Positions 8,941 to 11,857 of a stretch of 64,000 nt of DNA are shown one piece after another (the stretch's first letter is position 1; each line of letters opens with the position of its first letter). The stretch comes from Macrostomum lignano (Eukaryota): the NCBI GenBank assembly GCA_002269645.1, contig NIVC01002300.1, positions 121,535 through 185,534 of the forward strand, given 5' to 3'. The translations under genes were made by a program, and so were the position numbers. The notes beneath the pieces are model-generated. The model did not search any database, was not told where the DNA came from, and saw nothing but the letters and a program-made list of their open reading frames with translations.

Positions 8941-11857
8941 ATGATGCTATTTTCACTCCAGCGGCGTCTGAACTATTTCAGCTCAGCAGTCCAGCTGCGG
9001 CCGCTGCTGCTGCTGCTGTTGCTATTGGCAACCGAAGTCGAGCTGTGCAAATCTTCGGGGCGAAAAAAAATCACCCGGAAAAAAGCAAAATCGGCTGTTG
9101 ATTGCGCCACGGCAGGTGAGTCCAATTCGGAATGGTTTACAGCAGATGAGGCATTGGGAGATGAGGCATTGGGAGATGAGGCATTGGGAGATGAGGCATT
9201 GGGAGATGAGGCATTGGGAGATGAGGCATTGGGAGATGAGGCATTGGGAGATGAGGCATTGGGAGATGAGGCATTGGGAGATGAGGCATTGGGAGATGAG
9301 GCATTGGGAGATGAGGCATTGGGAGATGAGGCATTGGGAGATGAGGCATTGGGAGATGAGGCATTGGGAGATGAGGCATTGGGAGATGAGGCATTGGGAG
9401 ATGAGGCATTGGGAGATGAGGCATTGGGAGATGAGGCATTGGGAGATGAGGCATTGGGAGATGAGGCATTGGGAGATGAGGCATTGGGAGATGAGGCATT
9501 GGGAGATGAGGCATTGGGAGATGAGGCATTGGGAGATGAGGCATTGGGAGATGAGGCATTGGGAGATGAGGCATTGGGAGATGAGGCATTGGGAGATGAG
9601 GCATTGGGAGATGAGGCACAGGGAGATGAGGCATTGGGAGATGAGGCATTGGGAGATGAGGCATTGGGAAATGAGGCACAGGGAGATGAGGCATTGGGAG
9701 ATGAGGCACAGGGAGATGAGGCATTGGGAGATGAGGCACAGAGAGATGAGGCACAGAGAGATGAGGCATTTGGAATGGAGGCATTTTCCCCTAACAAAAA
9801 CAGCTAAAGCTACCCAGATCCCGGAACAGAGACGCTGCTAGTTCAAGTACCGACCTGAGTGCGTTTCGTGCACATGACTTGGCCTTTCATCTTGTTTTTC
9901 TTTTAGTCGTATTGGGAAAATAGGATTTCAGCATTTCTAGGCTGTATTTTATTAGTGCTCCCGCTGTTTCTGAGAAGCCGAAATGTTGTTTAATTTCCGT
10001 GTTGCAATACTCGCGTTAATCCCATTGTGTAAGACTGCTGTCCGTCCATCTAGCTTATTAGATTCAAGCAATTGGCAACATTTCCCTTCTCTAGCTATCG
10101 TCAGAGCTTGATGGCAGTTTAAATGTCTATGGCCACTCTTTCTTGCGATTGGTTTAACGAGGCACACAAGCGCGCGGATACGTACGCAGTCATACGCACA
10201 GGCACACACTCACACAAGAGTGTACAGCGGCCCTCACTGTGCCCTGGGTGTTGGCCCTCAAGGCCGTTAATTACACGAGCAGAGCCAAGCCGAGATTCTA
10301 ATTTAGCCCCAAAGTAAAGTGACGACTGCATTTGAGAATCGAGCCTGGGCCGCTGGCACATCAGAGTGCCGCGCCAGACCACTAGACTGGCTACCCAGAC
10401 TAATAGTCCCCCACACACTTTGAGTCACCGAGTCATCAGTCTCATGTTTCACCACCTGCGCTAGTCAGTCATAAACTTGTGCAACACGAAACCTCGTTGA
10501 CCGTGCAAGTGTGGCTTTGCTACAGAACGAGCTGTAACCTTTATGTTCCCTGGTTCCAACCTTCGACGTCTTTGAAGGACTTCTGCCCCAAAATAAATTC
10601 AGTGTGGTGTGCGTGTTCAAAAAGTCTTCTACATTGATGAAGCTACCGATTTTGATTCAACGATACTGTGCGACATTACCGGCCCTTGAGCTAGCTGGCT
10701 TCTCCGCTGAGTAGCAAAAGTCTTGGCAATTTGTAGCTGTGATGACCGGGTATGCAATAACTTTTAGCTGCATGCGAATCGCAGACAGCTCGCAACAAAC
10801 TCGGGATGTCTTCATTTTGTCTCAGTGTCAGTCTTTCTTAGTTTCTGTCTGTATATATGTCTGCCTGTCTGTCTGTCTGTCTGTCTGTCTGTCTGTCTGT
10901 CTGTCTGTCTGTCTGTCTGTCTGTCTGTCTGTCTGTCTGTCTGTCTGTCTGTCTATCTGTCTGTCTGTCTGCCTACCTGTCTGTCTGTCTGTCTGTCTGT
11001 CTGTCTGTCTGTCTGTCTGTCTGTCTGTCTGTCTGTCTGTCTGTCTGTCTGTCTGTCTGTCTGTCTGTCTGTCTGTCTGTCTGTCTGTCTATCTGTCTGT
11101 CTGTCTGTCTGTCTGTCTGTCTGTCTGTCTGTCTGTCTGTCTGTCTGTCTGTCTGTCTATCTGTCTGTCTGTCTGTCTGTCTGTCTGTCTGTCTGTCTGT
11201 CTGTCTGCCTGTCTCGCTGTCTGTCTGTCTGTCTGTCTGTCTGTCTGTCCGTCTGTCTGTCTGTTCAGTGGCTATTGATTATAAAATATGCTTTGTATAC
11301 TACTGTCTCAAAGTAAGTAGCATCGCAAACAAGTAGCATGCGCACACAACCCACACGCTACAGAGAAGTACCTCTGCGGCTCCGTCGCTTCCATCCACGA
11401 CGCCGACTCGCTGCGGGTCCGGACCGATGGCGACCTGACGACCTCGACGACGCGGATTCGACTGGCGCAGATCGACGCGCCCGAGCTCGACCAGGAGTTC
11501 GGCGCCGACGCCTTATCGGCGCTAGTTCGGCGCCTCCCGGTTGGCAGCCGCGTCTGCGTGGTCTCGCCTGGGCTCGACCGCTACGGCCGCGTGCTCGGCT
11601 TCGTCTGCCATGGCAACAGCGACATCAACCGATGGCTGGTGGCCGGCGGCCTCGCCTGGTGCTACCGCGGCCGCTGCTGCCCGGAATACCGCGCTGAGCA
11701 GGCCGAGGCAAAGCGCAGCGGTCGCGGCCTCTGGGGCCGTGCGGTGCCACCTGTGGAGCCGTGGGTGCACCGGCAGCGGCGGCGGGAGCAGCGGAAGAAC
11801 AATAAAGGGCGTCGTCCAAAAGGCGCCGCCGCCCAGCAGGGACGCGATTTCTTGTAA
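8941..11857 (+). CDS. Single-domain staphylococcal-nuclease (thermonuclease/SNase) family protein with hydrophobic leader; join(8941..9115,11364..11857), about 222 aa
   Basis: Exon 2 translates [19 protein letters not shown]...[20 protein letters not shown]...DRYGRVLG...[15 protein letters not shown]...[20 protein letters not shown]. These are the SNase motifs, with D19/D21, R35, D40, E43, D83 and R87 equivalents present. Donor G|GTGAG at 9115/9116 and acceptor CAG|AG at 11363/11364 are phase-compatible (G+AG = Glu). Exon 1 has an LLLLLLLL leader. The start codon is less certain than the nuclease exon. Confidence 0.88.
9145..9774. repeat. 15-bp minisatellite (GATGAGGCATTGGGA) x42 in the nuclease intron
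   Basis: Direct reading. Starts about 30 bp after the exon 1 donor. Confidence 0.98.
10161..10305 (+). repeat. Interspersed repeat; further copies at about 44631-44770 (+) and about 46795-46980 (-)
   Basis: Shared string GGCACACAAGCGCGCGGATACGTACGCAGTCATACGCACAGGCACAC...GAGTGTACAG in all three copies. Copies 1 and 3 also share CACGAGCAGAGCCAAGCCGAGATT. Confidence 0.85.
10857..11264. repeat. (GTCT)n microsatellite
   Basis: Direct reading. Confidence 0.98.

Follow-up and report, generated by a model that had tools for sequence, protein, structure and literature searches.

A predicted secreted thermonuclease of probable bacterial origin in a flatworm, Macrostomum lignano

A 64,000-nucleotide stretch of the genome of the flatworm Macrostomum lignano (assembly GCA_002269645.1, contig NIVC01002300.1, positions 121,535 to 185,534 of the forward strand; hereafter the window) carries, at positions 8,941 to 11,857, a two-exon gene encoding a leader followed by one staphylococcal nuclease-like (SNase) domain. 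An old transfer from bacteria to the animal, followed by domestication, is in our view the best explanation for this gene, the product of which is predicted to be a secreted, single-domain, Ca2+-dependent nuclease of the YncB type. To this explanation as a whole, which includes that M. lignano carries the locus as a functional nuclear gene (annotated Mlig013652, with a syntenic copy annotated Mlig008456), we assign a probability of about 0.75. We infer the transfer itself from sequence comparisons, as the most likely origin of the gene.

Two hallmarks of horizontal gene transfer (HGT) into animals were found. First, the best matches outside the species are non-metazoan: bacterial proteins reach 94–97 bits, compared to 24 bits for the animal protein SND1 and at most 50 bits for fungal LCL3. 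Second, the gene is linked to host genes, is interrupted by a spliceosomal intron and, according to its annotation, is transcribed. A first-pass annotation, made from the DNA letters alone, had proposed a horizontally acquired gene; this proposal is supported by the bacterial nature of the nearest relatives, and none of the refutation tests that were run spoke against it.

Gene structure, encoded protein and worm paralogues

The nuclease gene is organised as follows:

8941..9115, + strand: exon 1, 175 nt, with a genomic ATG, a signal-peptide-like leader, a basic linker and the first family-conserved cysteine, C55
9116..11363, + strand: single phase-1 GT-AG intron, 2,248 bp
11364..11857, + strand: exon 2, 494 nt including the TAA stop codon, with the complete SNase domain, the C-terminal motif and a basic tail

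Once joined, the two exons give 669 nt, that is 222 codons followed by TAA. The splice sites are cggcag/GTGAGT (donor) and gctacAG/ag (acceptor; slashes mark exon borders), and C55 is placed 4 residues before the intron. Read upstream from the acceptor, the frame of exon 2 meets a stop after 13 codons, and no in-frame ATG lies in the domain, the only methionines of the 222-aa protein being M1 and M2. The leader must therefore come from exon 1, and translation of the domain needs exon 1 or another supplied start.

Both GenBank and UniProt already list the protein, as hypothetical and "TNase-like". The best database match is PAA93539.1 (BOX15_Mlig008456g1), an M. lignano hypothetical protein with 98% identity, and PAA59060.1 and PAA47422.1 (Mlig013652g1 and g3, the latter model being 5'-truncated) match the predicted protein with 100% identity along their own length. 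All three proteins span the predicted junction (...DCATA/EKYLCGS...). The GenBank models of M. lignano come from a genome-guided RNA-seq annotation using StringTie/TACO and TBONE, with mapped trans-splice and poly(A) sites serving to delimit the genes (PMC5730564). As this annotation is based on RNA-seq and its models use exactly the 9115/11364 junction, the splice is supported by transcripts, through the models and not through inspected reads. The exon coordinates, the phase-1 intron and the 222-aa joined protein given by the first-pass annotation agree with both the sequence and these models. No other SNase copy was found in the window.

The domain, located at approximately residues 60–196, matches Pfam SNase PF00565 with E=6.6e-15 and 55.9 bits (cut-off 21) over profile positions 1–105 of 107, and a phmmer search of the Protein Data Bank (PDB) returned staphylococcal nuclease variants only, among the 60 matches listed. 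The AlphaFold2 model, built from an input alignment of 66 sequences, has a mean predicted local distance difference test score of 87.5, with values exceeding 90 across the whole domain. In Foldseek, too, staphylococcal nuclease gives its best matches (E=7.6e-10, target-normalised TM score 0.80, root-mean-square deviation 2.8 A, 133 columns); the modelled protein is an OB-fold beta-barrel with three helices that can be superimposed on this enzyme. When the residues of Staphylococcus aureus nuclease were mapped onto the worm protein, D19/D21 corresponded to D71/D73, D40 to D96, E43 to E99, R35 to R91, R87 to R134, Y85 to Y132 and Y113/Y115 to W157/Y159; T41, which is a ligand through its backbone, corresponded to A97. 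By this comparison the Ca2+ ligands and catalytic residues are all intact, and the complete stand-alone domain reported by the first-pass annotation is borne out by Pfam, Foldseek and the residue mapping. Ca2+-dependent enzyme activity is therefore predicted for the worm nuclease. The equivalog model for the calcium-activated nuclease EcnA (NCBIfam NF047969) gave 29.5 bits, compared to its cut-off of 180.

The ends of the protein have their own characters. The leader has arginines and, after them, eight leucines in a row (residues 22–29), and its hydrophobic core, at approximately residues 19–33, is about 15 residues long, a length more in keeping with a signal peptide than with a membrane anchor. 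At the other end, exon 2 encodes the motif GLW...PVEPWVHR and a strongly basic tail (residues 196–222).

Beyond what the first-pass annotation described, the nuclease gene is not a singleton: it belongs to a family of about 10 gene models in three diverged M. lignano subfamilies, A, B and C, that share 40–50% identity. Subfamily A comprises Mlig013652g1/g3 and Mlig008456g1, subfamily B comprises Mlig022653g2–g4 and a partial g1 (50% identity, 141 bits in phmmer), and subfamily C comprises Mlig018861g1 and Mlig002410g1/g2 (46% identity, 127 bits in phmmer). In each, two exons are separated by one phase-1 intron, which lies at the homologous place, four residues past a conserved cysteine (C-x-x-x-/) and immediately ahead of the domain's first strand; this intron measures 734 bp in subfamily B and 3,536 bp in subfamily C. 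Hydropathy indicates an N-terminal hydrophobic leader in all three subfamilies, and the catalytic residues and Ca2+ ligands are invariant across them. Five cysteines are also invariant in the worm proteins (C63, C123, C140, C158 and C163). Among 62 homologues from outside Macrostomum, which have on average 1.5 cysteines per protein, a cysteine at these positions is rare or absent (3 of the 62 at one position). With the N-terminal cysteine they make six, which could reasonably form three disulfide bonds, as is typical of an extracellular eukaryotic protein. Synonymous divergence (dS) is saturated between subfamilies (>1.2), with a nonsynonymous divergence (dN) of 0.54–0.65; the two A copies differ by a dS of 0.041 and a dN of 0.012, with one of their six amino-acid differences in the domain. 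That the leader exon, the intron and the cysteines are shared indicates that they predate an old triplication. From these sequence comparisons, the family is old and kept under constraint.

Relatives and origin of the nuclease gene

When phmmer was run exhaustively against 1.84 billion cluster representatives, it returned 14,147 proteins at E<0.001. The top matches were the gene's own subfamily, and the next three were also M. lignano proteins; below these, the matches were prokaryotic or metagenomic where checked, and twenty further top matches that were looked up came from M. lignano or from metagenomes only. In a profile search, the worm proteins scored at least 160 bits and everything else at most 125 bits, and no eukaryote besides M. 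lignano was named among the best 120 matches. The first-pass annotation had suggested the best database matches as a check on its proposal: in both searches these are M. lignano paralogues, followed, wherever the origin was checked, by bacterial, phage-like or metagenomic proteins.

The bacterial relatives are 37–48% identical to the worm protein. Named matches include Solimonas, Ramlibacter, Pseudomonas, Thiobacillus, Pseudoroseomonas and a Bacteroidetes metagenome-assembled genome. One homologue (P0002, 45–48% identical) is encoded on a bacterial-style contig by a gene that overlaps a SRAP gene by 4 bp. The best non-worm match of the profile search (P0229; positions 1-11234 of a contig from Logan SRR32119647) lies in a prophage-like block of small genes, beside a phage integrase gene and an Acb3 (anti-CBASS) gene, a location that fits the carriage of such thermonucleases by mobile elements. 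The contexts of two others (P0233 and P0234) include a Phd antitoxin, a GGDEF/EAL gene and iron-sulphur cluster genes. Homologues in GTDB, 26–39% identical, come from at least six phyla (Bacteroidota, Chloroflexota, Gemmatimonadota, Spirochaetota, Bdellovibrionota and Proteobacteria). Plasmids that encode a homologue number more than 5,000 and are mostly conjugative, with 41–42% identity for the best, and a homologue is present in only 4 phage records. No donor lineage was identified among the GTDB, plasmid and phage matches.

The C-terminal motif, in the form GLW...P.PW.[WF]R, is common to the worm and bacterial proteins: among the 62 homologues, G180, W182, P191 and R195 do not vary, and 59 conserve L181 and 59 conserve W192. 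The first-pass annotation had rightly called this motif bacterial-type. With this motif and its top scores, the worm gene has the marks of a eukaryotic derivative of the YncB-like/plasmid thermonuclease subgroup. The similarity to bacterial proteins begins at query residues 57–60, no more than 3 residues from where exon 2 starts, and exon 1 has no similarity to the bacterial homologues. Recruitment of this leader exon in the host is therefore more probable than the splitting of a bacterial signal. This bears on the intron gain proposed in the first-pass annotation: the intron is real, but its gain inside the bacterial frame is no likelier than the recruitment of a leader exon.

Could the gene have been inherited vertically, from an ancient eukaryotic or opisthokont LCL3-like SNase that was lost in nearly all other animals? 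Superficially, LCL3 has the same architecture, a hydrophobic segment and one SNase domain; the family is old in the lineage, dS being saturated between subfamilies; and the sampling of flatworms and protists is incomplete. We nevertheless consider this origin unlikely. A BLASTP comparison of the domain, with a 22-sequence database, gave the following scores:

Worm paralogues: 125–137 bits
Bacterial proteins: 57–97 bits (best 94–97)
Fungal LCL3 (five proteins): 40–50 bits
S. aureus nuclease: 39 bits
Human SND1: at most 24 bits

The LCL3 set was retrieved with a bait sequence that is 100% identical to a database entry, and the human SND1 sequence was checked against PDB 4QMG and 3BDL. LCL3 thus scores below the bacterial proteins, with 24–32% identity. 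In a neighbour-joining tree (56 sequences, 137 columns, 200 bootstraps), the worm genes were nested among bacterial YncB-like proteins, with 47% support for their own monophyly; LCL3 was monophyletic (100%), and worm and LCL3 sequences grouped together in 0 of the 200 bootstraps. The C-terminal motif of the worm protein is of the bacterial type, whereas LCL3 has TPGEYK instead; S. aureus nuclease and SND1 are also without it. Finally, M. lignano was the sole eukaryote among the named matches of the searches. The placement within SND1 or a vertically inherited single-domain clade that the first-pass annotation had singled out as refuting its proposal was thus not obtained.

A second alternative concerns the state of the gene and not its source: the family, or at least the copy in the window, might be a decaying or non-functional relic, transcribed without being translated into an active nuclease. 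It arises from the 5' end. The spliced leader of M. lignano ends in ATG, and its trans-splice acceptor motif is [T/C]TNCAG (PMC8629364). Two candidate acceptors are present in exon 1:

8956..8961, + strand: candidate spliced-leader acceptor CTCCAG, matching the motif; the leader ATG would be in frame (ATG/CGG CGT = M-R-R-L-N...)
8976-8981, + strand: second candidate acceptor TTTCAG; the leader ATG would be out of frame, opening a 40-codon open reading frame (ORF) that ends at 9101

The first is predicted to act as an in-frame trans-splice site: the partial coding sequence of PAA93539.1 begins at the first codon past the homologous acceptor in the syntenic copy, and the UniProt model A0A1I8GL13 uses the CTCCAG at 8956-8961. 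The second acceptor is found in the window copy only and arose by a GGC-to-AGC difference from the syntenic copy. The GenBank model of the window-identical copy starts at S15, just past this out-of-frame acceptor, which puts efficient translation of this copy in question; the lack of methionines other than M1 and M2 and the 5' truncation of the Mlig013652g3 model also lean towards a relic. On the other side, the ORF is intact in every copy, the catalytic residues, Ca2+ ligands and cysteines are invariant despite saturated dS, a single one of the six amino-acid differences between the A copies falls in the domain, and both the in-frame acceptor at 8956-8961 and the genomic ATG are present. A relic therefore appears improbable, even for this copy.

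Two further explanations can be set aside. Derivation from the worm's own Tudor-SN/SND1 by duplication of one SN domain would draw on the usual animal carrier of SNase-like domains (PMC3505149), but it is effectively refuted: the best of the four human SN domains gives 24 bits (E=0.02), no branches of the tree are more distant than those of the SND1 domains, and in the alignment these domains are without the D21/D40/E43-type catalytic set that the worm protein keeps. Bacterial contamination or an assembly chimera, which the GC content of exon 2 (0.70, compared to a window average of 0.47) might have suggested, is refuted by the GT-AG intron with host satellites between the exons, by the presence of the same gene and neighbourhood on an independent 608-kb contig, by some ten models on separate contigs that form three diverged subfamilies with one intron position, and by the animal genes that flank the locus, host exons also being GC-rich at third codon positions (GC3). 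The location among animal genes and the satellite-rich intron, from which the first-pass annotation had argued against contamination, are thus corroborated by the syntenic copy.

Under a bacteria-to-animal transfer, the history of the gene may be reconstructed as follows. An ancestor of M. lignano would have acquired a bacterial thermonuclease gene, possibly derived from a plasmid or phage. The acquired gene would then have gained a host-type 5' signal-peptide exon, set off by the phase-1 intron, and later new cysteines, five to six in number, that probably pair into three disulfide bonds. Duplication would finally have produced subfamilies A, B and C, now 40–50% identical.

Several points weigh against this explanation. 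In the neighbour-joining tree the monophyly of the worm genes has 47% bootstrap support and their sister group is not resolved, on 137 columns. The best 150 phmmer matches are mostly unnamed metagenome proteins, and source or context was looked up for about 25 matches; the comparison with eukaryotes covered fungal LCL3 and human SND1 but not plant CAN nucleases, with no search aimed at further species of Macrostomum, the remaining flatworms or most protists. Given the second acceptor, some transcripts of the window copy may not be translatable into the nuclease. Secretion is predicted from hydropathy only. The gene identifiers are absent from the searchable full text and from the supplements of the M. 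lignano papers checked, and no expression pattern was found there. Base composition has been discarded as a sign of foreign origin: exon 2 has a GC3 of 0.84, host exons in the window range from 0.58 to 0.77, and subfamilies B and C, at 0.64–0.69, are within the host range. As host exons are GC3-rich too, composition is uninformative in either direction.

Neighbouring genes, repeats and the syntenic copy

The syntenic copy, Mlig008456, is located inside the 608-kb contig NIVC01000025.1, with flanks 95–99% identical to the window. The protein encoded by its exon 1 is 91% identical, and its intron is longer (3,319 bp) through satellite expansion. What looked like another SNase copy, 9 kb upstream in this contig, was rejected, as the match belonged to a separate bacterial contig.

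The tandem repeats within and around the nuclease gene are the following:

8427-8619: (CTGC) array, 48 copies, upstream of the nuclease gene
8843-8910: 21-bp tandem unit, 3.3 copies, directly upstream of the nuclease ATG
9144..9785: 15-bp satellite AGATGAGGCATTGGG, 42.8 copies, within the intron
10844..11264: (TCTG)n microsatellite, 105 copies, within the intron
11990-13367: 30-bp tandem unit, 46 copies, beginning 130 bp past the stop codon

The 15-bp array is longer in the syntenic copy, and the satellite arrays bracketing the gene differ in length between the window and the syntenic contig. Rfam gave no match between 8 and 13 kb, and no tRNA was found anywhere in the window.

The other features of the window are listed below:

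3743-4312, both strands: reverse-transcriptase-like retroelement fragment, recognised by eye and by its inclusion in a chimeric model, with no Pfam match at E<0.01
~4366-5341: tandem array with a period of ~51 bp, adjoining the reverse-transcriptase-like fragment
6892-7995, + strand: single-exon rhodopsin-type G protein-coupled receptor (GPCR) gene (7tm_1, E=5e-26), ending 945 bp upstream of the nuclease ATG
21336-22478, + strand: intact DDE_3 transposase ORF, 380 aa (DDE_3 E=9.6e-19, HTH_32)
26327-26992, + strand: ORF Mlig031327g1 (PAA93541.1), hypothetical, with a C-terminal hydrophobic region
38716-39000, + strand: exon for the transmembrane region of a Cys-loop neurotransmitter-gated channel (Neur_chan_memb, E=7.8e-12)
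44056-47564 and 49145-53000, - strand: two tandem multi-exon paralogues of TRP-like cation channel genes (Ion_trans), with mutually alignable long exons

The chimeric model is the 1,918-aa UniProt entry A0A1I8GL13, in which a GT within the GPCR gene (7977/7978) is joined to the nuclease acceptor at 8961/8962 and which also strings on several unrelated genes of the window. The joining of the two genes is a hint of co-transcription: the GPCR and nuclease genes may be paired as in an operon, with trans-splicing resolving the pair. The same entry has swallowed the transposase ORF, which probably belongs to a Tc1/mariner- or IS630-like DNA transposon and may still be coding. It also accounts for two GenBank proteins clustered with the nuclease at 90% (P0034 and P0035): these correspond to the ORF at 26327-26992, are linked to the nuclease only through this chimera and were discarded. 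Further along, the Cys-loop channel exon runs into a TG/CA-rich low-complexity tract, and the TRP-like channel pair looks like a local tandem duplication.

Predicted function and comparison with known nucleases

By homology with staphylococcal nuclease, a mechanism can be proposed for the worm enzyme. The leader would direct the protein to the secretory pathway and then be removed. Ca2+ would be bound by D73, D96 and the backbone carbonyl of A97, E99 would activate the attacking water, and R91 and R134 would bind the phosphate and stabilise the transition state, so that DNA and RNA would be cleaved to 3'-phosphorylated products; nucleic-acid binding is probably aided by the basic C-terminal tail. 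An extracellular role appears most plausible, either gut digestion of nucleic acid from food (diatoms, bacteria) or the breakdown of extracellular DNA or biofilm at the body surface. The calcium of seawater would suit such an extracellular enzyme.

We also put forward, as a tentative suggestion that may well prove wrong, that a mobile-element thermonuclease has become a lineage-specific family of disulfide-stabilised extracellular nucleases, whose three subfamilies act in different secretions and give the worm a new ability, at least one copy taking its start codon from the spliced leader. If this were so, the secretions might be those of the gut, of the epidermal mucus or adhesive glands, or of the reproductive tract, and the new ability might be to obtain phosphorus and nitrogen from the nucleic acid of diatom or bacterial prey, or to dissolve a DNA-based biofilm matrix.

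To our knowledge, fully domesticated bacteria-to-animal transfers are uncommon outside rotifers, nematodes and arthropods. Signs of domestication here are the intron, the signal-peptide exon, the new cysteines predicted to form disulfides and the expansion into paralogues. In the searchable literature we found no report of such a transfer in this flatworm, nor of any animal single-domain thermonuclease. The finding of one intron position in three old subfamilies would offer a clean example of a prokaryotic frame fitted with a eukaryotic secretion exon. M. lignano is amenable to transgenesis, RNA interference and in situ hybridisation, and in such a tractable host direct tests could be made of what an acquired secreted nuclease contributes to adaptation. 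The claim is otherwise a modest one: the enzyme is an ordinary thermonuclease, and single-enzyme transfers into invertebrates are already known.

Among the known systems whose sequences were compared, SND1 scores lowest. It shares the SNase-like fold but has four to five SN domains and a Tudor domain, without the classical catalytic set, whereas the 222-aa worm protein has one SNase domain only and does not belong to the Tudor-SN/SND1 group. The plant nucleases CAN1 and CAN2, compared here by description and not by sequence, are eukaryotic proteins with a single SNase domain, for which Ca2+-dependent DNase/RNase activity was shown experimentally (PMC3505149). They are not secreted but anchored to the plasma membrane through N-myristoylation and palmitoylation, whereas the worm protein starts with MML... 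and is without Gly2. Fungal LCL3 (the YGL085W family) likewise combines, in a eukaryote, a single SNase domain with an N-terminal hydrophobic segment; it differs by its lower identity, by large insertions between strands and by its C-terminal motif. S. aureus nuclease A has the same OB-fold, and all its Ca2+ ligands and catalytic residues are conserved in the worm protein, for which it provides the mechanistic model; it is 23–25% identical and lacks the PW.[WF]R motif and the cysteines.

The closest counterparts are the bacterial YncB-like "thermonuclease family proteins" (COG1525, PF00565), such as Solimonas soli WP_084196818.1, the micrococcal nuclease of the Agrobacterium plasmid CP039914.1 and those of conjugative enterobacterial plasmids. 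These also consist of a leader and one SNase domain of ~135 aa, their motifs are identical to those of the worm protein (D-G/A-D, R.RL..IDAPE, DRYGR and GLW...P.PW.[WF]R), and some members have a basic C-terminal tail. The worm gene is not an uninterrupted prokaryotic gene with a Sec or lipoprotein signal fused to the domain, being split into two exons by a 2.2-kb intron: it differs from its bacterial counterparts by this spliceosomal intron, a separate leader exon, extra cysteines, animal neighbours and a family of paralogues.

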